Assembly (NCBI GenBank): GCA_025786725.1
Contig: JAHLTZ010000059.1
Span: forward strand, 1-64,000
Reading direction: 5' to 3'
Length of the DNA: 64,000 nucleotides
Source: Syncephalis fuscata S228
Lineage: Eukaryota > Fungi > Zoopagomycota
Both the position numbers and the translations under genes were made by a program. The notes under the pieces are model-generated. The model was not told the DNA's origin, did no database searches, and worked only from the letters and a program-made list of their open reading frames with translations. Shown in pieces: positions 37,017-63,893 of this stretch. Each line of letters starts with the position of its first letter. The stretch's first letter is position 1.

Positions 37017-37163
37017 TTTATTAATAACCATAGTGTGTTTGGTGCAAATGACTACATTTAATAACGTTCAATTTATTGAACATGATGATGAGTGGCGAGT
37101 GACATCAATCATCAAAATACTCATCATCTATTAGATTAGTCATTGGTTACTGAATCACAATAT
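37017..37163. repeat. Dispersed ~150 bp repeat R2, copy 1
   Basis: Reverse-complement match to 44654-44804 (ttattaataaccatagtgtg...gcaaatgacta...catcatctatta...aatcacaatat). Confidence 0.85.
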
Positions 37164-37296
37164 TACTAAAAAGTTATTGTCAGCTTAAAATGTTTAGTTT
37201 AATATGTTCGATATTCAGGTCGCCATGTTATTTTTATTTAGTCCAAAGGCCCGTTGGGTTTCAAGCAACTTATTCGTTTTTTGATTTATTTCATTA

Positions 37297-39269: not shown

Positions 39270-41319
39270 TTAAATGGTTGGATATACGTCTTCGTTGTGA
39301 TAATCATCAGCAAGATCGCCTCTCCAACTATGCAGTGAATGGCCAGTACCACTGTTAATAGAGTTGTTTATAAACGATGACACTGATAATGATTGCAGTG
39401 TATTAATAGGTTCTGGCGCAATGACATTTACCGGAAGATTGGCTATTTCGTTTTGAAAAATGCTGGCTTGAGAGGGAGTTGAATTGATGAGACCGCCATA
39501 ATGAGCCATTAATAAATGATCAGAATTAATTGAAAGCCTTAGCGTATCACGCACTCTGTCAGGCGAATCGCTTGCTGTGCTGTTGTTACATTGAACATAG
39601 TCATCGATGCTAAAAGTATCTTCACGTCGATCGGCACTACTTGTTTGCACTCTTACAGCTGCCTCAATGGCGGCTTTTTCCTCAGTCGACAGTATTTCAT
39701 CTTGATCAGCTATTAAAGATGTATTGCTTGGTATGGGTGTATCGGCACGGCTATAGCGTATTGTTGCTGCTGTACTGTTTGCAGTCTCAGCCATTTTTTC
39801 AACTGCATCAGCAAGTCCACGTAGCAGCAAATGATGCGAGTTCGACTCGCCACTTAAATTATGTGGACTGTTTGACCGTAGACTAGAGATGGTATCACGT
39901 GGCGATGTACTGGATTTTGTCGACGTATTCTCGTCCTCCAGCTCAGCGCTAGGCTTCAGTGTAATTATGACATCACTAATGCCCTCAGGACGACTTTCGA
40001 GGGTATTTGCGCGATTTACAATGATTGCCGTTGGTATCATTAGCGCATTGCCGTGCTGGGAGATACGCCAATCCACCGATGATGCCGACATGCTTTTTGG
40101 TCGATTGTTGCTCGTGCACTCACCTGTGTTTTCGACCATCAAAGAGTGGCTGGTCCACTGCTTTCCATTACTGTTTGGCGCAGCCATTAGGGCCGATGTT
40201 CGCCGGCTTGTTTTGACATTTACTTCTATATCACTTAATGTATCCCATTCATTTAATCCGGCATTATAGCGAGACTGTCGTGCGGTGTTTATAGTCATTT
40301 TGCTACTTGTATTTATGGAATTGTGTTGCGTCGACTGGCGAGCAATAGATGCTGCTTTTGCCGCCGAATTGATGTAAATACGCTTCATTATGACGAGTAC
40401 AATTCCAGGCCACCAAAAAATATGAATAGGTATTTCCATAATTAAAGAAAGCCAGAATCGACTCATTACTTGAGTGTGAAAAAATCCCCAAGTAATACAG
40501 ATTGATGTGCCACCAAAACAAACTAACCAATTGTAAAGAAAGGTGCGCTGTAGATGATGTACCGAGGCCATTTCTTGGCCATTGGCATTGGATGACTTGT
40601 GAAGTTTAGATTTTCTCGAATGATAATAAGCAAAGAAATGCAGTAGTAGCAAGCAACGGCGCCAAGTATTATTAAATTTATAGACCACATACTGTAGCCC
40701 CACTGTAGGCCCCAGTCAAACAATTCCCAGTCTCCAATGTCTGCGCCATGACCGCCTATATAGACGAATGGAGCCGTCAAGCAAGCACCCCAAAGCATAA
40801 GCACTGTAAAACAGCTGACAAATATCCAGCGTGACGGCACCCAAACTGTCAGCTGTGGACCATACATGTTTGGATCATTATCACAAACTGAATTGCCAAT
40901 CCCTCGAACAAACACTGGCGGAATAGCTTCAATAATACCGGCTAGAAACACGGTAACGCCCATAGACCAAACCAGTACGAAAAGTCATTGAAGAGTTCGC
41001 GTGTCGCAAATGTTGGTAGTGCATCGGTGAGTACCAGAATTGTTTGAATTAACCGGGTAACACATGCACCTAGAAAACAGCCTATCATTCCGTCGGCTGG
41101 CAGTCGAACTATCTTTCCTGATCCAGAGTCTGCCAGTAATGTTGGCCAAAGGTAATGCCAACGGTACCACAGTAAATAGCCACCAAATATAATTGGAACT
41201 GAATGTGCAACTAAACTGATATACATAATCCATCGATGAACCATTTCGTGTTCACACTCGTAGATAGAAAGCATCCAGTAGCATTCTCTTCCAAATGGTG
41301 CGGAATCTGGAAACCTCAT
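39270..41319 (-). CDS. Orphan 7TM receptor-like protein A (C-x-W-x6-C family); two apparent frameshifts
   Basis: ORFs 40942-41319, 40523-40963 and 39270-40703 overlap in series, giving CYWMLSIYEC, seven hydrophobic helices and a ~360-aa Ser/Thr-rich tail. Confidence 0.8.
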
Positions 41320-42900
41320 TTAGGCAAGGATTTTTAGCTAAAAAATATTATTACGCAAGATAAAAGATCTATAGTGTATATGAGCAAGATGGTAACAAGC
41401 AATTTTGAAATAATGGTTTAAAAACAAGTCCTGAAAACATTTATTTTCTCCTTTAACATACTGCAGAAAACTACAACTATGACTGGCGTTTATAGTATAA
41501 GGTTCAGCCCAAAGTTATGTAATCTTTCTTATGAAGGATACCATCAACCGTGGATCCTTACAGTCACTATAGACGATCAATTGCAACGATCTAAGCCGGT
41601 GATCAAATAAATCCAGTTTGCAACTAATGTGCCATTATATCAGCCGTATTCTAGCAAATTATGCTATGTTTAGCTTTAATATGTAATTTTATAGTCATAA
41701 TAAAGTAACAATAATATAAAAAAGAACAAATATTGAGCAATATTGTTTATTGCCAGTTGTGTTTGCTTATTAAGTGCATATTTTCATCTTATCATCTTAA
41801 TTTGGCTTGAATAGGTTTATAGTACAATACAAATGAATTAAAATATATGCTTTAAGCGATAATGTAAAATAGTTTAAAGGGATAGCATAGTGTTATGCGT
41901 AAGTTTAACAATTGGTGTCATAACTATTAAACTTTACCATGCTGCTATTCCCCGGCCTATTCCAGATTATGATCATATAGCATTGCGTATTCCAGCACCG
42001 TTAAGATTTATTTTGCCTATGGCAATTTGAAGCAGTTCTATAAAAAGTGCGTATTAGCTATTGTTTGTATAATCTGGGACGACACATGGTCAGTGTGCTA
42101 CTATGATGCAAAGATCTGCATAGCGCATGAGATAGCAGGACTGCTTTTGTGTCTGAATCATTTCGGAAGTGCTTTTGGCAACAGCTTTCATCCATTGCCT
42201 TTGTACAACAAGTAGGTATACGGATAAAGAAAGTCAAGTAACGGCACTTCCAAAACAAAAAAGGCTGTATGACACAAATTTAGAAAGTAGGGCGTTACTT
42301 GGTACTGGGCAATAGACTGGCTACTAGTATACTCTTTGCTCTGTGTGATGGCTTACAATTTAAGAAAATATGCCATGATCCGCGCCAATGGTACAAGAGC
42401 ACCGCTGCAACTTATAAAACAAACAGGATTTTAAGCCAGGATACATATATTATTCTGGTTATGTTGCACAAGACTTAATGGCTCGCCGCTTGCGGAAATA
42501 TTCTAGGCAGCATCATCAGCTGCACGCCATATCGTTTATTTCAAATTTCCGGCATGTTCAAGGAAATGCTAAATTCATTTTGTTCCGTATCCGACGACTT
42601 ACACAGTCCTTGAAACCATTTCTAATTTAATATCGCAATAGTCGTATCAGCTCAGAGAGCAGGCCTGTGCCTGTAAAGTACTCATTTTGAGTGACTGAAT
42701 ATATAATTGCCACCTTAATATGGTTGCACCTGGCACTAGTTTTATTTTACCCTTCAAATTTATCTGATATTAATTTTCATTTCATGCAGACACTTTGTTT
42801 GCAACGTTCGTAATTGCGCATAAACTTACAGCTGTGCTGTAACTTGCGGCTTTTATTTTATTTTATTTTAGTTTACCATTAACATTCATTATTACTGCTC

Positions 42901-44250
42901 ATGCACTTCAAAAAGCTGTCCCTTTTGATGGAAACTGCTTGTGGACAATCAATATTTATGACTGCAAGCAGCAATCAGTGTTTATTTTTGTAGCTTCGCC
43001 AGCTGTGCCATTTATGGCATGGCTGCACTTATGGGAGTTTCCTTGCTAATTTATCGCTACCGACATGTTTGGTCGGTTGAAACGCGCGTTAACAGTGCTC
43101 GATTGATTCGACGCCCCGTTGACTGGATGATTGTTCATTTGGCCTGGTGCTCATTCGCACGTTCAGCGTACACTCTTTTGTTGGCAATTGACGTAATTCC
43201 AGGTGCAGCCATTCGCCAGTTGATTCTGGCATTTACCAATTGGGGCTACTTGTGGGCGCTGGCTGTTTTTCTGGCCGGTGTGGTAGAAGCATTATTTTTA
43301 GTTTTACAACAAACTTCTTTTGAAACTAACTTTCGTTGGTGTCGTGACACAAATCAGCCAAGTAGCCCAGGACGAGGAACGAGAAAGTTTTGTGGCATTT
43401 CACTACACTCGATAATGGAGCGAGGTATTCTGATGGTCATTGGACTCATAGTGTGCGTTGTGCCATGTACGGCCACTGCTCTTTCGTATATGGCTGGTCA
43501 AGCACTAGATACAGAAAATTGGGATGAATACGCAAGACTAGAGCAGCTCAGTTGGCTAACTTGGACTGCAGGCCTAGGATGCTTAGCCTTTTTGGCTTCA
43601 CTCTATCTGGGCTCTCTTTCATCTGTTCTACGCCAGTCGGCAAATCTATTACGCTTAAGCGCTGCAAGTTATGACGCTGATACATCGCAGCAATTATTAT
43701 GGCTCATCAAATTAATGATATGTTTTTATATTAGCAGCACGTTAGCATCTATTGCTCATTCACTATTATTTTCAATAATGTTGGCTCATTTCTACCCAAG
43801 TATTGCTTATTTTGCCTTTTTTGAAGTAATTTGGTGGCCATGTCTTACTTTGATTATATTTATTGTTATTAGTCAAAATAGACAACGGACGCCTTCAAAT
43901 ACATTTGAAAGCAATCAGTCCAACACATTGCCAGCTTTATGGCACTCTGGCTTCTCCAGAGGACTTGCCCAAACTTCAACACAAAGCCCAGGAATGCTTG
44001 CGCTCAATAGAAGCATTTTTCAATCCCAAATTCTTTGCATTCTGAGGATAACTTTTCTGTTCATACCTGGTCGCCTTTAATAGATAATGACACAGAGATA
44101 ACACCAATACTTCCTATACGAACCTGCTCATTACCTCGTGAGTTGCCCCCATCACCCTCTGTCTCTGTTACAGTAGTTATAGAAAAGTCATTTATGGATG
44201 CGGCTGTAAACGCAGTGCCAAAGCACAAGTCGGTGCCAAACTTTTTCTAA
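42901..44250 (+). CDS. Orphan 7TM receptor-like protein B (C-x-W-x6-C family)
   Basis: CLWTINIYDC encoded at 42936-42965 upstream of ORF 43019; RRPVDW, FLAGVVEA, WWP as in paralogue A; tail continues in ORF 44035-44250. Confidence 0.78.
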
Positions 44251-44653
44251 TACGAATAAGCCGGTGTACCTCCTACGCTGTATAATTGTGACGAATTCAG
44301 GCTTGTCAAAGTGGGTGCATTTATTTATTATATAAGCCAGTAAATCATTGCTTTATTTCTTGAACATGTCAGCGTGCAATATTTTTATGTGGGTTGGCCT
44401 AAAAGTGTCATGCGACGGTAATTTTTAAATAGTAATCCATTTAAAATATTTTTTGTCAATGCTGTCATTATTTTATTAATGACATTGTTCTATGAATATG
44501 CTTGCCTTTAAACAATTGATAATAATCTTTTACTCCTTAATTATTCTCGCTGTTTATTTGTTTTACAATACTGAACTTTGATATAAAATAAAACTTGAGT
44601 ATAATTTATCGGCTAAATTCATACATTTATTTAAACAATTAAATTATTTAATT

Positions 44654-44804
44654 ATATTGTGATTTAGTAACCAAATGACTAAACTTAATAGATGATGCGT
44701 ATTTGATGACTGATGTCACTCATCACCCATCAGCATCATGTTAATAAATTAAATGTTATTAGATGTTAGTCATTTGCCCAAAGCACACTATGGTTATTAA
44801 TAAA
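44654..44804. repeat. Dispersed ~150 bp repeat R2, copy 2 (inverted)
   Basis: Reverse complement of 37017-37163. Confidence 0.85.
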
Positions 44805-44840
44805 TTGTTTAATATTTGCAATATCGTAGTATTTATCTAT

Positions 44841-46610
44841 TTATTTCGTTGCACTTGATGCCGTACTTTTGTCTTCAATCCGCCACGAGTTGTAGAACAC
44901 GAATGCGGTTGTTAGAAGACATTTTCTGCTTGGAATTATCAACCAGATCCTGTTCTTGCACGCCAATAACTATGTGTATATCCTATTAGCTAATCGTATT
45001 AATACATTGTCATTTACCTTCTGCTAATTCTTGGACAACATCATTGGGCAGCCATGCAAATCCATTGTTTGCAGCAATACTTGGCCACCTTACTGTCAAG
45101 TATTCTATACAATTCTAATAAAGTTGCATAATATTGCCATGTTAGGATCGGATATTTCAATCTCATTATACTGGCCATTTTCCTGTTTAATTGGTTGATC
45201 GTTGGTTATAGATTGATTTAGATTTGTTGGTACTGTTGTTGCGAATAGTATTTCTGTAGTTAATTGAGATGAAAAGAAGATGATATTATTCAGCATTTTG
45301 AAAGCGACGTTCTGTCTCTTTACAATAAGCTTTTTGATTTCCATGTAAATCACTAGTTTATCTCGCTCTCGACCAGAAAGAGAAAGCATTGCATCTAACC
45401 ATTCTTTAATTATCTCTGCATTCCAACCAACTAGCAGCTTTGGCAAATCTTTATCAGTCGTTAAACAGCCAGAAAATTCTTTTGCAGCACATTCGATTGC
45501 CCGACTATATATTTCATCATTCATCAAATGGACCTGTGACATCCATTGGGAGGAGTTTGAAGCACCAGCTATCGCTTTCCGTTCTGAAAGCTGCCATTTC
45601 AACTCGTGACATCGCATCAATGTATCAGCTATTGAATTAGGCGTACATTTTCCAATACTAGCTGTAAAATCTCATCACGTTTTTCCTTAGATAAACGATT
45701 AACAAAGTTTGCCGAAAGCCAGGCCCGGTTGTAGCCATGAGTAAGAACATAATTGCAGCCTTTTGTTAATGCAGTCAAGTTGTAGCGTTCCGAAAATGAT
45801 AAAAGACCGGGTATCTGTGGTACACACGTATCACATATACAGCGCAGACCATGAAGGCGATGGACTATTCGGTGCAAGCAATAGGAATGTAGAGATGGGA
45901 AGTCAAGGAAATCGGCTGCACGCCAAATAGCCGTCCAATCTGCTAATGTTAGTGTGGCTTCTTTTTCAGCTGAAGCAACGCTAGAGCCTGTATAAAGAAA
46001 ATGTATCATATATGGCAGTGCGCGCGCAGGAACGCAACTATCTGGCAGGTGAAATTGCCCTAAAGATGATTCAATATAACGATCATCAACAGATAGCATA
46101 GCTCGGAAATATCCAGATCGTGCTGCTAGAGAAATCGGTGTACGCGCTCTTCTGTCTTTTGCTCCTTCAATATTTTATCTGTATCTTCAATGTCTATAAC
46201 CAGTTTTGCATCTCCGTGAGCACGGCTTGCTAAAAGACAGTCTAGCGAGGTAATAGCAGCGTAATAGCTACGCAGTTCAATGGCTGAACTAGATGTCGAA
46301 TTCCATACAAGCTTTGTATCTGATGCCGTATCGTCTCCACTTGTAGTACTAGTGCTATTATCATAAGCTGTATTTGTTGTACAATTGCAACGACCGTAGC
46401 AATGCAGTATAGCTTGGTGTGTTTGCAAGCCATCAATAGTAGTATCGGCAAACATCGGCGCATCACAGTTAGTATCACCGCCAAGAATACAAATAGCTCC
46501 GCTAATTCTTTGCCCAGACATGACTCTGGTCGAACAAGTAAATGGCGCAATTCCTTAGAGGCATGTGGTAATAGAAAACGTTTAGAAGGCTTAGTGTTCT
46601 TGTGTGCCAT
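44841..46610 (-). CDS. BTB/POZ-domain protein (several apparent frameshifts)
   Basis: GDAKLVI...RVHRFL[fs]AARSGYFRAML...MIHFLYTG...IWRAADFLDFPSLHSYC is a BTB pattern; terminal intron near 44970-45017. Confidence 0.78.
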
Positions 46611-48219
46611 AGTAAGTCCAAGTAATTATGGAATTCAAAAACTACAGCGTGTGATAAAGACAACGATTATTCATGCTGGAACATTTCAAAGGTCTTGTGA
46701 TTAGTAATGTACACGACGCTAAATAAAACGTGTGATCCATCCATACAAACTCTTTAGCATGAATGAATACGCTGCTGCTACGATGTTTAAAATAATGATA
46801 TATTCCGCCATATACTGTAACTATATCACTTGGTAAACGAGTAATACAAATACACAAGTAATTCCATATTATTAGCTTCATTTATATTTATTCCCATCAG
46901 GAACCTACTTTAATAGCCAAAAGCTTATTTTGATCAAACACAAAACAATAGAATATATTAAGCAAGCTTTTTATTTAAATCAACAATTTTTGTCTTGATA
47001 GTTTAATATATCCTGTGTTTTATCCACTATTTCAAATTGTTTATTTGATTTTAAGTAGCAAATATGTAATACCGCAGATCCTTTACAATTATTAATAGAA
47101 GCATAAAGAGTAGTATAGCTTGGTTTATACAATTGCTAGAATAATAATGTTCAGTCAATTAGCTTAGTAATAGTGCCACGCTTGTAAAAACAGAATTACC
47201 ATAACGTGAAATGACGTGTTATCTACACATGTATATAATGGTATAACAGCAATAGAAATAAATAAGCCAATTAGTCAAATGGTTTATTTCTATTATTGTT
47301 AATAATGGATAGTATGATGTAGTCGTATTAACGTGACTAGTATTGATCAAAATAGTCATAGAGATGGGATGGATGAATAAGGATGTGTAAATAGCACTGC
47401 AACTGCAACTGCAACATGCTATGTAACTATGATTTAATAATTAATGTTACTTAGCATCTTAATTCATTCATACTAGGATAAATTCTTAGTAACAAATAGC
47501 GCAATACTATGAAACTATGTGTTTTGAATAACTCGCGCAAGTACTTTTGTGCTTAAATTAGAGTCGGCATGCTGTCTTTATTTGGTAACTGACAACAGAC
47601 CTCAATAGGCTGCCGAAACCTTTGCGTGGTTTAAAACGAAGCTCTAAAGCGCGGACAATATCTTGTATGGTTGGGCAAACGCGCCGTTGCACTGGCCAGA
47701 GCGGCAGTACGTTTCTGGGATCTTTGTGTTGCACTTTGTCTATTTTTGCTTTTGGAGCAGCGCTTGCAGCGTGGGTTTACTGGTCATTGCCATGTTGGTC
47801 GACGCTCCCTTGAATTTGTGTTACGGCGCATTGGCTTTTCGGGCATATTGGACCACGTACATGGTGTTAGTATGGATTGTCAACCTTGATCATACCATCT
47901 CAACAAGTACCCGAGCAACCTATTTTAATTTGTAGATTAGTGGTTTATTTGTAAATAGCTACACTGTTGCTGCAACGCCAACATTCTACCATTTGTCTAT
48001 TCTTTTCTTGATGCTATTGAGCTAGCCTAATTTCATTGTTTCTTATTGTCCATAGCAGTTATCCTTACGCGACGCTAACAGCAAGCGTTGTTTCTACTTA
48101 ATCTATTTATCTGCAAGCTGGATACTTGTTACAGGTTTTATTTTAAAATTAACGTCGCACCCAAAAGACAAATTAACAACAACAACAGCAACAATAGCGT
48201 TGGCTCTAATTAACGCAAA

Positions 48220-50439
48220 ATGACACCAGAGTCGACTGCGCCAGAATGGACTCACCATTGTTATTGGCTCACTGAAGTGCGCAATTGTCGATACGATAAT
48301 GTCCACGAGAATATTGTCATTTTCAGTTTATGTGCGCATGCCATTCCAATGTTGGTTGGAACACATGCACTATGGCTTCGTTATCGACACTTATGGCGCG
48401 GCCTATACTGTCGTATTCGCGGCCATATTGTGCCATCCACCGTTGAATGTTTGCTTGTCCTTTGGACTGTTGAAAGCTATGCTCGCGTTGCCTTCTTGCT
48501 AGTTACTCTTTTGGGCGCTTGGCCTAGTCCAGTATGGCAAGAAGTGGCGTTTAGTGTTGCTATTTTTCCGTTTATATTTGGTATTATTCTCTTTTTGTGC
48601 GGTTTAATCGCCGCCATTCCGCCGTCACTTACCTATACGCACCATGTTAACGCCGACGGCACCGACAGCTTTCACTGGAGTTTTTCGCATTGGTCGAAAA
48701 TGCCACAGCGACTTTCCGGCGCTGGTGTCTACGTACCATCCATCCGTGCTTTGCAAATCACTACTATTATCATCATGCTTAGTATAGTAGGGGCCATTAT
48801 CCCACTTTCCGTGATGAATGGACTTGCATGGTCGCAAGGCAATTGGGACGCGCTTCTTTACTGGCGAAAAATCGAATTTCTCGTTTGGGGTGCCCATGTG
48901 TTTATAATCTTCGCTATTACCATCTACTACAGCCGCGGTCTATCGGCCATCATGAGAGGCAGTCTTCAAACGCCCGAATCAGAACATGATAACACCGAAC
49001 ACGGCTTTACTTCAACCGACCTCTCGATTGAGCACGGTCAACGCCGAACCAACCGTACCATGAATCAACGACAGTCCTATCCAATTCAAGAAAGCTTTGT
49101 CGAACCGGAGGCCCGCCCAAGATGGCCACTGGCTTTTGTGAAAAATCCTTTGAACCGTCGCCAAGATAGTAGTAATCAGGCCGCAGTCAATGCTGCTACC
49201 CGTGTTGAACACATTTTTACGGTGCTTCATATTGTAACGGTCTTATTTCAATATTCGCTATTATTTGGGCTTTTATTAATCATAAAATTATTTCCGATTC
49301 TGCGGCAAATATTGCTTTAAACATTGGTATGAATGGCATCGTTCTACCATTTACCTTAGGATTTACTTTGTGGAAGCTGCAACAGTCAACACTGGCCACA
49401 TTGCATACACATCTTTCTGCAGTCTATGAAAATACCAAAAATGCACTCTATCGCGTAAAAAATGCTGTACGCTATCCTCAACACATCATTAGTGATATTG
49501 ATGGTAAAGATGACTATGACATTGACGAATCCGTCAACGGTTTTAGAAAGCAGCCATTTGAGATGGCCGAAATCGACGAGGACCGCTACAACTTTTTCAG
49601 GCAAAACGAAGAGTATGTATGGCCAACAACGGCAGCTGAAGAGCAACTTAACCGAACCAACCGACCGGTAAGTAAAATATAACTAATTTGTGCTGCTATT
49701 ACCATTTATTAATATTCATTATTTTATTTAGCCAAGTGTGCCGTCAAAAACAAAACTATTCAAGAGTGCATCAAACGAAGATATTACAGAATTTAGTAGT
49801 AGTTGGCGACTACAAGCGGCATTTCACCCCAACGTCCGTCATCATCCTGTGTCTATTATCAACGGACCTGCCGTGCCACGAGCCATCCACAATGACACTG
49901 ATTTGCAACCAGCATGGTGTGATCGTAGCGATATTAGCATTAAAGAGCCATGGATCCATGTCGAGAACTCTTGCGCAAATAATATGGATTTTTCATCTGA
50001 TGCTATGCCACAAAACAAGCATCTTGATATGGAAGAGCTTGATGCGTTTGGCCCTCATCACAACTTTTACACAAGTCCGCCACGTCCACAATCACCTGAT
50101 CCATATGATCGGGGATTCGCCAGTGATGCAGAACCTGTTAATTATTATTTACGCAACAGCAATAACAATAACAATATTAATACTGTTACTGCTGCTACCA
50201 ATAATAATAATAATAACATTGATAATATTAGTATTGATATTAATGATAGCAGTCATCATCACTACGACGACGAAGATGATAACGAAAATCATATAAGCAG
50301 TTGGTGGACAAGTGCCACTCGGCCATCACCTATCATAATGATATGGATAACTCGTCTGATGACCAAGAGTCAACTCTGTACAGTAATCCCTTTCCAGAAG
50401 TATAGTCGCCACTGGCACCATAAGCCATTAATTCAATAA
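48220..50439 (+). CDS. Orphan 7TM receptor-like protein C (C-x-W-x6-C family); intron ~49669-49731 in the tail
   Basis: CYWLTEVRNC, LWLRYRHLW, PSTVECLL, WQEVAF, FLCGLIAAIPP, VYVP; long Asn/Asp/Ser-rich tail; 3' end uncertain. Confidence 0.8.
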
Positions 50440-51840
50440 TTTAATAACTATAGTTTAAAAATAGCCGTATTTAATTCAAATCATGCCCATTTATCAGCAT
50501 TATTACTAATAGTACTATTATTATCGTCATCATTGCCATTATTGTTAGTCATTTTGCTTTTTTTCTATAAATCTTGTTGCATCTATTACTATTTACTGCT
50601 GTTGTCCGATAATAAATCTAGTTTGTTTGTGTAAAGTAGCCATTTGCTACAACATCAAATCAATAGATTGCTGATAGATACACGTCATTTGCAACACGTG
50701 CTAAATTACCCAATTAGCTGGTTCTTGCTAAATACACAACTACCGTATTCCGAGTTCAAACGGCTCTTTCTTAGTGTGTAACCATCGCTACAAGGAACAG
50801 CATAGGCGACATCCTAGTAAGTTTACTGTTATGATTGCGCAACTGCACATCGGCACATGATATCACTCGTCAAGTATCAGCTGATATGCACCCTGACTTT
50901 AATAGAACTAACATAGTAAAACTTGCAGTTATAGCAGCATTTGTTATTTTGATATCATACGGAAATGGCGAGTATTTATTCGACTGTCCCAATATAGTAT
51001 CGGCGATGACTTTTGTTACTAAATAGAACTAAATATAAAACATTCCACATGTGAAGACTTGAAATAAAAGATCTTTGCTCTTTATTATTTAGTATAAACT
51101 ATTCATTTAGCTATCTATGTTCTGCTTATACGCAAAATAGCACTACTGGAATAAATAAACGCAATGGTTACATTTATTTCTATTTACTAACGACTCATCC
51201 TACCATTATGGCAGGTTATCAAATTGTGTCGATGTAACGATAGCCGCTGCCTTAATAGCATTAACAATACACATTCGGTGAATCAATTTAAGTTGTACAC
51301 AGACACAGACGCCCCGTCCGCACTACCATCATGGTTACAATGATTATCGTTACAGTAGATTGACAGCAACAACAACAGCTACTACGATATAAGGACCATT
51401 TTCTTTATTATTATTAGTATGTCGCCTTTTTTGCCCTTTTTTCGCATTCCTTGATTTTGTTTTCTGTGCAGTGTTGTTGTTAACGATTTATTTGTTGGTT
51501 ACTGTGCCGATACTTACGTTTCCTTTTTTTGTTCTAACTAACACATCACACCGTTACTGCATACCAGTTACTTTACGATACCGTTCTAACGAATTGATGT
51601 TCACATTTTGTTGTGAAAAACCAACTTTTTTGTTCAAATTTAATTGATGTAATTACAGAGCTATTGTCTCTTTTGAACTTGAGTTTGTGCGTTTAATGGC
51701 CCCGCCATGATTAAACAACACCTACTATTTATTCTATTTATTCTATACTTACTGGCCATCAGTGATGTTGCACTATCAACGGAACCATCTATATCCAGAC
51801 AACTAATAGCAATAATTCCAATCATTATGATCACGATTCA

Positions 51841-53656
51841 ATGGGAATGAATGGCCCATCCTCTGATGAACAACCGCTACCTAATTGTGACTGGCGTCTG
51901 TCGACAAGCAAATGCTATGCCAGTTGGATACATGAAGGTATTCTAGGCACGAGTTTAGGCTGTTACTTTTCCCTTATTCTCGCCGGCACTATACTATTAC
52001 GACGTCGATGGAAGGTTGACTGGACACTGTCACAGCTCGATCGCTCCTATGGACATGCTAGGGCCGATGATGGCGGTATTCGGCGCTACTGTCCTCTTTT
52101 TCGTCGTCTCGTGCACTACACTTATTGTAATGCACAAAAAGCGCCCACCTCGCACCATAGTCGACTCGGTTCGCCGAACAACAACCATGACGATACAGTG
52201 CACTGCAACGTACACGGCACTGGTCGTTGGTCGCGCATGATAACCTCCCCCGTCGATTGTCTCTTGCTATGCTGGACATGCTATGGACTACTAAGGCTGA
52301 TCGGGGTCACCATTACTCTACTCGGATTTATTAGCACAACGGAGATACAAGAAGTAGTATTTAATCTATCGCTATGGCCAGCCTCTATTGGGGCCATCAC
52401 TTTCATGGTGGGCCTAGTAGGTGGTGATCCACCTCGACGTCTTATCAACTGTTCAAGTAATAACGGCCAGCCAAAATACTGGATCCATAGACCACCTATT
52501 TGGTGTCTACAGTTTATTGCTCTATTCCATTTAATTGTCTATCCGGTTGTCACATTAACTTGTTCTATCTATTCGGGTATTAAGGCTGATTTATTTGATT
52601 TCTCGTCATCGCTGCAATGGGATAATATTTCTATATTATTCTGGTCTATTCAAACCTGGCCGTTTGCCATTATAGGCGCCGTTTATATGATTCATTGTTT
52701 ACGAGTACAGCGTCGCTTTAATAGCCCGATTTATCACGAAGCAGCCCCATCTAATAGTAATGGCAATGGCCATGGCCATACAATGACTTGCCAGCCGCTT
52801 AATAATGAAGAGCTGCTTTATATTCGACAACTAAACCGTATCTACGGCACTGTAGCTGCAGTAGGCATTGCCGTTGGTCTATGGACACTTACCGCCTCGT
52901 TATTGCCTGTACGCCGTATTGGTCATACTGTCACCTCATCCATGTTAAGCAATATTGCCTTTAACTGTATTGCCCCCATTCTAGCTATTGTTATTATGAT
53001 GACTGTCTAAACAAATCACGTGTCTACAAAGGCTTTTACAGCACTAATGGAAGTTATCGAATGTTATGGAGTTCCGATAAACGCTTATCTCCTCCAAAGA
53101 TGATGACAGAACAACAACATCCATGGTCAACGAGCAATTCTATTTATTTACCAAAAGGTTCACTTCATCCAACTGACTATCTTCAGCAACAAGCCATTGT
53201 TCTGATATACTTGAAAGTGTTCATTCAATGGAGATGCGATCACCTTCACCTATGAAACCACCTCCTATAGCCTATCAACGCAATGATCGACACCATCATT
53301 ACCAGCAACAGTTATATCATACCAATTCAACTGCTACCACTACAGATCATGATTATAGTAGGACTAGTATAACCAGTGCTACTAGCTATACGCACTATGA
53401 TGATCAAACGGGCAAACGCGTCTTTATTGAAGGGCGTGGTCCTCGAGTGAGTGCCGTGGGCACCCATAATAATGGATTCTTAACAGTGGGCACCTATAAC
53501 GAAGAACGACTCGTTAATAATGCCAGTGAATATATGTCACCACGAGGTTCGTTCTCTAGTGGAGATGGACGTGGTTATATTATTGAAATGTATTCAGTGG
53601 AAGAATCAGCTTATATTGAACGTGAAATTACTGATAGTTGTGATAGCCGTGTTTAA
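51841..53656 (+). CDS. Orphan 7TM receptor-like protein D (C-x-W-x6-C family)
   Basis: CDWRLSTSKC, SPVDCLL, IQEVVF, FMVGLVGGDPP; seven hydrophobic segments in ORF 51841-53010; tail continues through frameshifts to ORF 53228-53656. Confidence 0.8.
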
Positions 53657-53766
53657 ATAAATATCATGTATTGTTAACAACATTAACACTGGTGTAAACA
53701 TTAACACGTTAGATGATGCATTTGATAATAACATAATATTAATTAATTAAAGTAAATACGTTCAAT

Positions 53767-60845: not shown

Positions 60846-62744
60846 AATTATTAGCTCCGCTATTGTCTTTTACCATCTAATTACACTAGAATCACTTTTT
60901 AATATTGCTGCATAATTTCACAGCATCCAATCAGCATTTTCGTTTTTAAACTTATAAATAGCGTTTTATTAGCATTTTAAGCTAATACAAGTAAAGATAT
61001 TACGTTTTTACAATGCCATATTCTTACATTCCAATATTATGGCCATACTGCTGTGCTAGCACGCCTAAAAAACTATCATATTATCAAAAACAATCACAGG
61101 TGAACAATTACAATAATAATATCTATCTATCTATCAAATGTCAACACTAATTACTAACAAAAAACAACTATTGCAAAGATATGACGCCTAAATACTTGTC
61201 GTTATAATAGTGTTATTATTTTAATAGCAATAGTAGTAATCTACATTGCCATCGTTGATGTGATAAGTGAATCTGGCTGCCAAATCAGTAAATTATTTGG
61301 TTTGGCAGCTGGCCGTTACCGGCTGGTTGGGTTTGTGGTGGGGGGGGGGTTTAGTCAGGCAAAGATTAAAGCTCCAATATTTGACTTTAATGTTTTTGTT
61401 AGCTCTTTGCTTATAACAATGAACAGCTGTTTGATAGCTTTATTTAGATAATAAATAATTTATAGTTGAATTGTTAGTTGTTATTACTTAATTTAACCTC
61501 TTATTGAGGTTCGCCATATTGACTACATTTGATGCAACAAACAAGACTGATGGTTACAGCTGCAAGATTTGACGCCATACGGTGACAATAGTGTTACTTC
61601 TTGTTATTCCGTAACTTTTGCTTAGTGGTGAATTCTATGTACTGTTGCTTCTATTTTGACGTGCAAAAAATTTCACACGTTTACCATTCTGCATGTGCTG
61701 ATATGCGCGACATTTACAACCAAAATAGCATGCATGAAATAGTGATGTCCATACTTCTTGGCAGTTTTACAGTACCATGTGATTGATAAGACGGAAGACT
61801 AAGTGTAAACATCACGTAAAATTAGTAACGTGTTTAATTGTATTTTATAATACCAATTTAACCAATATAATACTTATTGGCTTATAAATAAAATCAATAT
61901 TTATTCAGCACAGGCCATCAGCTTAGACTTGTTATTAGTGTTAACGTGGAGCAACAGCCAAAAGCAGTAGACACGCTTGCATTTTGCATATGTTATGCAT
62001 TGATGCACGTCAAATATTGTGCAGAAAACCTGTATTGCATACTATATTTTTTGTAAAGCTATTGATATACAACCCAGTATTTACATGGCAAAAATAAACA
62101 TGTATCAGCCTGTCTTTCGACTTAAAGGATCTAGTTTCAAGTACGACCGACGCGTGAATGGTTGACGTACAATTCAACGTGAAACAGTATATTTTACCGT
62201 GACAGCACCCATGTGACTTAATCCATGCATAATCTACTGCTGGTGGTCATTGGCTTATGTCGGCTGGTAGCTGCAGAGTATCGCTATCGTATAGCAAGTT
62301 ATTTATGGAACAAAGCTGCACGCAATGCATGTGAGGATTTTCTGCTACAAAGGCATTATAGTAAGCGACAATTGTTTCACAAGGCGACTTAATCGCGAAC
62401 GAACCATTGCAAGGTCTAACTGTACATGGCTGTCGTACCGAATAGAATGCTACATTGGCCGAATTATGCACGACTGTATTTTTTACCACAATGAGTGGTT
62501 CCGTATTATGCACAGTTTATTGCTTTCGTGTAAATACCGTTTTCCGAGTTGGACTATGGCCAGTCGATTAGTATAAAAGATGTGTTGGACGACGACGTTC
62601 TACTCCACAATATCATCACATAAGCTACCAACTGCTCTCTAGCACACTCACTCAGTTCTGCACTTAGTTGTTATACTAATCGTTTATATATTTGTTCGGT
62701 ATCTATTGCACAATACTTTTGGCATTATAAATATTATTTTCAGT

Positions 62745-63893
62745 ATGCGTACTTATTCTTCTTTGACTTTTGCCTGCTTCTTGGTCGCTGCGCTGGCCCG
62801 CATCGATACAACAGCCGCTCTGCCAACCTACAACAGCTATGGAGCTCCCGCAACATACACTGCACCAATGGCTAATCACCAACGACCAGAATTTGGCCAT
62901 GGACGTGAAATGAACAACCGTGACCACGAGCGTTATGGCAAGCCAGCTTATGGTGGCCGTCGCCCTGAGGACTGTGACGACGATCACAAGCCAGCATATA
63001 TTACCAAGCGTGGCTACAACGACTACTCGGCCAAGCCAGCCGGTGGACGTGACCACGACCGCGACTACGACAACCACGGCAAGCCAGGCATGGGTCACGG
63101 CAACGACCACCATGACAAACCAGCTCACGGTGGCCGTCGTCCTGAAGACTGCGATGATGAGCACAAGCCAGTGTATGTCACCAAGCGTGGCTACAACGAC
63201 TACTCGGCCAAGCCAGCTCATGGCAATCGTCCTGAAGACTGCGATGACGAGCATAGTCAAAAGCCAGCTGGTGGCCACGACCACGGCCGCGACTACGACA
63301 ACCACAGCAAGCCAGGCATGGGTCACGGCAACGATCACCACGACAAACCAGCTCACGGTGGCCGTCGTCCCGAAGACTGCGATGATGAGCACAAGCCAGT
63401 GTATGTCACCAAGCGTGGCTACAACGACTACTCGGCCAAGCCAGCTCATGGCAATCGTCCTGAAGACTGCGATGACGAGCATAGTCAAAAGCCAGCTGGT
63501 GGCCACGACCACGGCCGCGACTACAACGACCACGGCAAACCAGGCATGGGCCACGGCAACGACCACCACGACAAACCAGCTCACAATGGCCGTCGTCCCG
63601 AAGACTGCGATGATGAGCACAAGCCAGTGTATGTCACCAAGCGTGGCTACAACGACTACTCAGCCAAGCCGGCCGGTGGTCGTGACCACGACCGCGACTA
63701 CGGCAACCACGGCAAACCAGGCATGGGCCACGGCAACGACCACCACGACAAACCAGCTCACGGTGGTCGTCGTCCCGAAGACTGCGATGATGGGCACAAA
63801 CCCATCCCAGCTCCATACATTCCACCACGCAGGTAAGTTATTTTTATTCCAAATACATTTTTACTAATATATTTCTCGATTAGTGCATACTAA
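62745..63893 (+). CDS. Secreted tandem-repeat precursor with KR cleavage sites (KEP-like), His/Asp/Gly-rich; terminal intron 63833-63883
   Basis: Signal peptide MRTYSSLTFACFLVAALA...; four Y(I/V)TKR|GYNDYSAKPA junctions with DNA periods 177, 228 and 228 bp; spliced end PPRSAY*; TATAAAAG at ~62572. Confidence 0.88.

Follow-up and report, generated by a model that had tools for sequence, protein, structure and literature searches.

What do four genes that crowd within 14 kb of the genome of the zoopagomycotan fungus Syncephalis fuscata S228 encode, and do their broken reading frames mean that they are dead? The genes, here g1 to g4, lie in a 64,000-nucleotide stretch of contig JAHLTZ010000059.1 (positions 1 to 64,000; hereafter, the window), and an initial annotation, made from the letters alone, had described them as a cluster of orphan seven-transmembrane (7TM) receptor-like genes. 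[quoted passage not shown]

Open reading frame (ORF) listing and three-frame reading located all four genes where they had been noticed. The 7TM protein of g1 (39270..41319, minus strand; ~680 aa) is split into three ORF pieces, and g2 (42901..44250, plus strand) encodes one of ~450 aa; these limits stood. Those of the other two plus-strand genes changed, g3 ending at 50405 instead of 50439 and g4 starting at 51707 instead of 51841. As revised, g3 (48220..50405) encodes 707 aa in two exons (48220-49666 and 49731-50405) flanking an intron (49667-49730), and g4 (51707..53656) a 7TM protein that opens at ATG 51707 with a stretch resembling a signal peptide. Pieces of the four genes are mutually alike in BLASTP (43-52 bits, 21-38% identity), which together with their positions bears out the proposed cluster of related 7TM genes. 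The array is nevertheless larger than the four, since g6 (71576-72634, plus strand) and g5 (~74332-75777, minus strand; a single open frame of 481 aa) lie farther along the contig.

The family is visible only to exhaustive profile searches; a word-index protein search with g3 returned a single match, P0001. The profile was therefore built (alignment A3) from the g1 to g4 pieces, an intact paralog and P0001, leaving out the TM6-7 fragments, which misaligned as separate rows. Run against the same genome (29.4 Mb in 371 contigs), it recovered g1 to g4 at E values of 1e-44 to 1e-148 each, a consistent but circular result, as the profile was built from them. It also gave ~21 matches at E≤1, and ~12-15 family loci in S. 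fuscata. Four database representatives show 100% identity to S. fuscata loci, one of them, P0020, having been deposited under that species name.

At least eight frame breaks interrupt g1 to g4 in the window, a burden that a decaying pseudogene array with genuine frameshift mutations would readily explain. RNA contigs of run X1, compared with the assembly over 48200-53700 (g3 and g4), indicate otherwise. They exceed the assembly by one base after each of positions 49237, 50315, 50413, 50892, 51783 and 53009, and by five after 51312, and every indel between these contigs and the assembly is a deficit in the assembly. In g3, the assembly lacks a C after 49237, within TM6, and a G after 50315. With the C in place, TM6 continues in frame and matches the orthologs from Syncephalis plumigaleata (L028) and from a metagenome contig (L001), both of which run in one continuous frame across TM6-7. 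Once corrected and relieved of its tail intron, g3 is an open 707-aa frame whose last residues match those of the L001 ortholog. That intron (64 nt, GT..AG ends) is skipped by a run X1 contig, and therefore the run contains cDNA. In g4, the missing bases are a C that follows 51783 and a T that follows 53009; the T removes the stop that closed the core, and the C links the upstream ATG 51707 to the gene, yielding a hydrophobic, signal-peptide-like start shared by the g4 orthologs P0017 and P0010. A further frame change lies near 53160-53177. Where RNA contigs supply the base, the frame breaks of g3 and g4 are thus bases missing from the assembly. Base-corrected and joined readings were used for frame reading only; database searches and folding took unchanged assembly pieces.

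The frames of g1 and g2 rest on comparison rather than on RNA contigs, a circumstance that leaves the pseudogene explanation some room. Relative to the S. plumigaleata ortholog, which is one open frame and 83/79/70% identical to the three g1 pieces, g1 is short of one base near 40950 in TM3 (GGGC-GTT against GGGCAGTT in the ortholog) and of another near 40610, after TM5, where an A-run is one base short. In g2, the g2 ortholog P0007 (55% identity) and the family spacing place deficits in the A-run 42910-42914 and, most simply, in the T-run 42985-42989, with one more in the tail near 44040-44070. P0007 sets the TM1 frame, which from 42992 onward needs no correction, and one base missing upstream gives g2 exactly the family spacing, a count of 36 residues between the second Cys and the L/V-W that follows TM1. 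A tandem duplication of 5 bp (ATGGC) at ~43019 of g2 was also considered; the TM1 frame and this spacing rule it out. The g1 and g2 breaks all have one polarity; of the four that fall in the cores, three lie in A or T runs. Because of this uniform polarity, the intact orthologs and the low proportion of nonsynonymous differences in the g1 pieces, each read in its own frame (pN 0.10-0.16, against saturated synonymous differences, pS 0.67-0.94), we infer that assembly error also underlies the breaks of g1 and g2. Taken overall, pN of 0.09-0.18 against pS of 0.5-0.94, and dN/dS of ~0.06-0.11 where pS is unsaturated, indicate purifying selection.

Two further observations bear on decay. A duplicate contig carrying g5 differs from the intact copy by a frame break, as gaps in the assembly would produce, and the metagenome ortholog L001 contains two in-frame TGA codons, as expected of a pseudogene. 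Taken with the RNA-restored frames of g3 and g4 and the open orthologs, this leaves the pseudogene array a very improbable explanation; the frame breaks of g1 to g4 are mostly or wholly assembly gaps. The L001 codons themselves (1754-1756 and 1925-1927) correspond to an Arg and a Trp of g3 and fall in a frame that is otherwise continuous and conserved, with dN/dS of 0.11 against S. plumigaleata; pseudogenization, sequence error and recoding are candidate readings.

These gaps have damaged the deposited S. fuscata gene models. Model P0004 represents g2 only from 43019, without its N-terminus, and includes a 73-nt "intron" that takes out TM7; P0060 is a 291-aa fragment of g4 in which two "introns" bridge frame breaks. 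The initial claim that frame breaks hide the family is borne out by both. Repair by RNA, which had been proposed as a check, succeeded for g3 and g4 with the run X1 bases, and the repair of g1 and g2 was drawn from orthologs.

Both g3 and g4 are expressed, being covered in run X1 by a spliced cDNA contig and RNA contigs of 1-2 kb. Indels aside, the RNA contigs over g3 are identical to the assembly. One over g4 (51101-53054) carries 17 substitutions relative to it (~0.9%), affecting 12 coding codons, 7 of which change the protein; they may stem from another allele, another strain or a closely similar copy. The same g4 contig starts ~600 nt before ATG 51707, and a depth-6 contig between g3 and g4 skips 112 nt with GT..AG ends (50816-50929); these two observations point either to a lengthy 5' leader, which may be spliced, or to a transcript of its own.

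The feature that first set these genes apart, a C-x-W-x6-C motif at residues ~13-22, was found in all four: CYWMLSIYEC in g1 (41254-41283), CLWTINIYDC in g2 (42936-42965), CYWLTEVRNC in g3 (48259-48288) and CDWRLSTSKC in g4 (51886-51915). A Pro replaces the Trp in g6. Among 84 relatives (g5 numbering), the Cys pair is nearly invariant (C13 96%, C22 98%), accompanied by D14 (77%) and W15 (71%). The consensus of this hairpin is C-D-W-R/T-x5-C, with an N-x-T sequon inside it in several members. Beyond the N-terminal pair, no conserved Cys was found among the 84. Several of the anchors initially read from the window genes likewise proved to be family-wide: an Arg after TM1 (R53, 78%), a P-x-P before TM2 (P75 and P77, 81%), an Arg in TM2 (R92, 70%) and, around TM3, an Arg at its start (R110, 69%) and a Gly at its end (G131, 92%) followed by Pro, in the form Y/F-x-x-G-x5-P. 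D102 (65%), P152 (82%), G179 (86%), W201 (78%) and a (W)P in TM7 complete the signature. The D/ERY motif at the TM3 end, NPxxY in TM7 and the TM3-ECL2 (second extracellular loop) disulfide are absent from the 84-member alignment.

An N-terminus outside the cell and a C-terminus inside fit the loop charges, the hairpin sequons, the signal peptides of the g4 subfamily and the mucin-like S/T-rich N-terminal extensions of Mortierella relatives. By the positive-inside rule, inner loops of the 84 members are net positive (intracellular loop 1 [ICL1] +3.6, ICL2 +1.5), and the N-terminus (-2.2) and outer loops are neutral or negative. The predicted N-out 7TM topology thus held, as loop charges fit it and seven helices were modeled for g4 and g5. 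Two details of the first description did not survive whole. The genes were said to lack signal peptides, which is not so for g4 with its ATG 51707 start, and each was said to end in a Ser/Thr-rich tail, which is true of g1, g2 and g4 (19-30% S/T) but not of g3 (9-16%).

Structure prediction was equally consistent with a receptor-like layout. The AlphaFold2 model of the g5 core, from 144 aligned sequences, has a mean predicted local distance difference test (pLDDT) score of 89.7 and a predicted template modeling (pTM) score of 0.87, and shows an ordered N-terminal segment besides its seven long helices. The unchanged g4 sequence 51841-53007 (pLDDT 80.3, pTM 0.82) also folds into seven helices, with a disordered 65-aa insert in ICL1. 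In Foldseek searches of the PDB, all 50 top rows were GPCR-fold chains, at E values of 3e-3 and weaker. VIA-align against 48,161 chains placed g5 closest to CB2 and LYCHOS (Z 16.7), EP1 (16.6) and GABA-B (16.4) and g4 closest to AT2R and PAR1 (15.9). The best 50 rows of each model were all GPCR-fold chains, including one designed, soluble version of the fold, with 215-305 residues aligned and Z at rank 50 of 14.3 (g5) and 13.7 (g4). Helical bundles reach Z of ~14 by arrangement alone, and it is the uniform list spanning the whole bundle that counts. Nearest in shape in the ESM Atlas was a Mucoromycota cluster (TM-score 0.72), Git3/Gpr1 and animal GPCR clusters following at 0.55-0.59. The modeled fold is thus a GPCR fold with GPCR connectivity and packing, and both checks proposed for it, seven AlphaFold helices and a Foldseek comparison, agreed with the GPCR-like layout claimed at first.

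No GPCR class stands out among the matches, the top fold rows being tied within 1 Z. Class A receptors (7tm_1) such as CB2, S1P1, LPA1, GPR55, PAR1 and AT2R are the top fold matches, sharing bundle connectivity (Z 15-17, 240-275 residues aligned, root mean square deviation [rmsd] 4-5 A), a short outward N-terminus, a long ICL3 and tail, and extended TM5 and TM6. Identity to them is only 6-13%, and the Syncephalis family has instead a signature of its own in the N-terminal Cys hairpin, the R in TM2, the G-x5-P at the TM3 end and the W-P in TM7. Gpr1/Git3 (PF11710, PF11970) is also a fungal 7TM family whose third inner loop and tail are very long (TM-score 0.59 over 286 residues). It has no sequence match to the Syncephalis family, lacks the N-terminal hairpin and is mostly from Ascomycota in the ESM Atlas row, whereas the family described here was found, as sampled, only in early-diverging fungi. 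The Mucoromycota clusters of the Atlas (feature score 0.94-0.96, TM-score 0.72 over 311 residues) represent the same family; they are uncharacterized and have no common Pfam family, and one is automatically named "putative GPCR family 1 profile domain-containing".

Could these proteins be very divergent members of a class already recognized in fungi, namely, the rhodopsin-like class 15 or the cAMP-receptor-like class 5? Class A chains dominate the fold lists, two of the 84 relatives weakly match 7tm_1 (best E 9e-5), single members match V1R and Srw, and one Thamnocephalis relative bears the UniProt automatic name "GPCR family 1 profile". However, neither 7tm_1 (PF00001) nor Dicty_CAR matched any window gene or the close paralog g5 at E≤1, and the family profile retrieved nothing under E 0.01 from PDB sequences, where weak GPCR rows were out of register. 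The genome-wide PF00001 search matched only C212, a locus outside the g1 to g6 family. Rhodopsin-like receptors of chytrids carry D/ERY, NPxxY and the TM3-ECL2 cysteines (PMC3251606), all missing from the present family. Membership in a recognized class is accordingly improbable. C212, the sole 7tm_1 locus in the genome, is broken up into short exons.

Searches of the window genes or their pieces with hmmscan yielded no Pfam match, nothing usable appearing at E values up to 10. Ste2, Ste3, Gpr1/Git3, cAMP-receptor-like, PTH11/CFEM and DUF6534 models were equally silent on the pieces, g5 and the 84 relatives, in agreement with the first reading of the window, which had seen no Ste2, Ste3, Gpr1, PTH11 or CFEM signature. 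The N-terminal motif holds two Cys, unlike CFEM, which has eight.

A more serious contender is a GPCR fold without G-protein function, i.e., an endomembrane or housekeeping seven-helix protein like GPR137, TOM1/THH1, PRRT3/4 or the LYCHOS domain, acting, for example, as a regulator of trafficking, lysosome/vacuole signaling or lipid handling. A language-model feature search pointed in this direction, with THH1/TOM1/TOM3, PRRT3 and GPR137_N clusters at 0.87-0.89, although by calibration scores below 0.9 are leads only. The corresponding Pfam models PF06454, PF27607 and PF25987 matched none of the 84 relatives or any other member, and PF06454 had no match in the S. fuscata genome, where its control also had no match anywhere. 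The TOM1, GPR137 and PRRT3 leads were set aside for want of this support. LYCHOS (GPR155) is a lysosomal protein in which the GPCR-like region is joined to a transporter-like domain. Its GPCR-like domain ties with the top fold matches (Z 16.7 over 235 residues, rmsd 4.2, with g5; Z 14.8 with g4), and the absence of class A activation motifs likewise fits a non-G-protein role. LYCHOS is, however, a larger protein in which that domain is one region (entries of 577-579 residues, aligned at ~369-721), and its lysosomal location and transporter-like domain have no counterpart in the Syncephalis family. The disulfide hairpin, the sequons, the g4-subfamily signal peptide, the Mortierella S/T extensions and the multiplication into diverged paralogs all fit a surface protein better. 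We thus regard an endomembrane role as unlikely, while ranking it first among the alternatives to a surface receptor.

As surface receptors, the proteins would expose an outward N-terminus forming a short hairpin closed by a disulfide between the two nearly invariant cysteines; after it would come the 7TM bundle, whose third inner loop is long and disordered, and finally a long tail that is S/T-rich in most cases. The stapled hairpin might cover the extracellular mouth of the bundle, with the conserved charged residues Asp14, Arg92 (TM2), Asp102 and Arg110 keeping it in place. Ligand binding could then be relayed to one of two G-alpha proteins or, alternatively, to adaptors reading the phosphorylated loop and tail. 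Two clear G-alpha genes occur in the genome, 15 kb apart (C306:469482-470473 and C306:484604-485961). Several points weigh against this scheme. That the hairpin lies above the pocket is conjecture. As DRY, NPxxY and the TM3-ECL2 disulfide are absent, class A activation rules cannot be assumed. TM7 of the g5 model is one straight helix without a separate helix 8, LYCHOS, not a classical GPCR, ties with the best fold matches, and fold alone does not show function. Classical G-protein coupling is hence a tentative suggestion, to be held with more doubt than credence. Contig C306 also carries four or five members of the 7TM family at 899-918 kb, 430 kb from the G-alpha genes.

How far does the family extend beyond Syncephalis? 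The HMM search proposed as a check identified 157 representative clusters (E≤1e-3), of which 55 reach ≤1e-10 and 21 reach ≤1e-30. Thirty of the 157 representatives were looked up; 29 have an organism name, and the other one is, like P0001, a metagenome protein. All 29 come from Zoopagomycota (three Syncephalis species and Thamnocephalis), Mortierellomycotina (Linnemannia, Lobosporangium, Podila, Gryganskiella, Modicella and Mortierella), Glomeromycotina (Ambispora and Entrophospora), Mucoromycotina (Cunninghamella and Halteromyces, both weak matches) or chytrids (Phlyctochytrium and Blyttiomyces); no Dikarya were seen in this small sample of 29 named relatives. The looked-up proteins are all hypothetical or uncharacterized, the Thamnocephalis one bearing the automatic GPCR label. 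An uncharacterized family of early-diverging fungi, as first proposed, is what these searches describe, and the epithet "orphan" applies insofar as the family is uncharacterized but not to its labeling, since some relatives were already automatically named in UniProt.

The array is old, since every paralog has its own ortholog in other Syncephalis species. In a tree of 66 rows, g1 to g5 each pair with their own ortholog from another Syncephalis species or a metagenome contig (SH-aLRT 97-100), and paralogs join only deep within a Zoopagomycota clade. The N-terminal piece of g2 in this tree (<30 residues) is in the wrong frame, and the g2-P0007 pairing rests on the remaining row. The g1 and g3 orthologs of S. 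plumigaleata are adjacent and in the same direction, with no further synteny found within the window. The proposed check of synteny was thus positive for these two genes but for nothing beyond them, and the proposed age of the array gained from both lines of comparison. In S. fuscata, g1 runs opposite to g3, and the arms of a diverged inverted repeat of roughly 160 nt (37017..37175 and 44642..44804) enclose g1 and g2. The arms comprise three collinear inverted pairs, 85-92% complementary, which were detected with shorter seeds only, a repeat search at minimum length 60 having given nothing. An inversion between them would explain the direction of g1, as flipping the segment back would orient g1 as g3, the arrangement of S. 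plumigaleata. Between g2 and g3, S. fuscata has the ORFs of a BTB-type gene (44841-46610, minus strand); nothing lies between the g1 and g3 orthologs in S. plumigaleata.

The fold is known, and the family is not described in the literature searched, where nothing relevant was found on Syncephalis or Zoopagomycota in connection with GPCRs. The latest unified fungal GPCR scheme recognizes 17 classes, its receptors having been found via Pfam domains, and its text names neither Syncephalis nor Zoopagomycota (PMC12842992). A family without a Pfam match is therefore invisible to such a scheme, and public databases enter the relatives of g1 to g4 as hypothetical proteins, a small number of them automatically labeled as GPCRs. 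Signal perception is poorly mapped in early-diverging fungi, and a GPCR-shaped family provides concrete candidates for host or mate sensing by obligate mycoparasites and their relatives. The question is testable, as relatives occur in culturable Mortierella, Linnemannia and Cunninghamella. More speculatively, and with considerable doubt, the family might constitute a distinct GPCR class that dates back to the ancestor of fungi, survives in chytrids, Zoopagomycota and Mucoromycota and may have disappeared from Dikarya. Its hairpin would serve as a built-in lid or tethered ligand, and in the mycoparasite the diverged paralogs would respond to cues from hosts or mates, among them perhaps the product of a Kex2-type precursor encoded on the same contig.

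The candidate precursor is a 376-aa ORF (62706-63836, plus strand) located between the g1 to g4 group and g6/g5. It has a signal-peptide-like start and four to five near-identical His/Asp/Gly-rich repeats, each with dibasic KR and RR sites, the layout of a Kex2-type multi-peptide precursor. The g5 locus, in turn, is present in three near-identical assembly copies (C327:72832-76881, C356:20896-24948 and C185:1956-6005), which probably represent haplotigs or contig redundancy; only the C356 copy is interrupted by a frame break.

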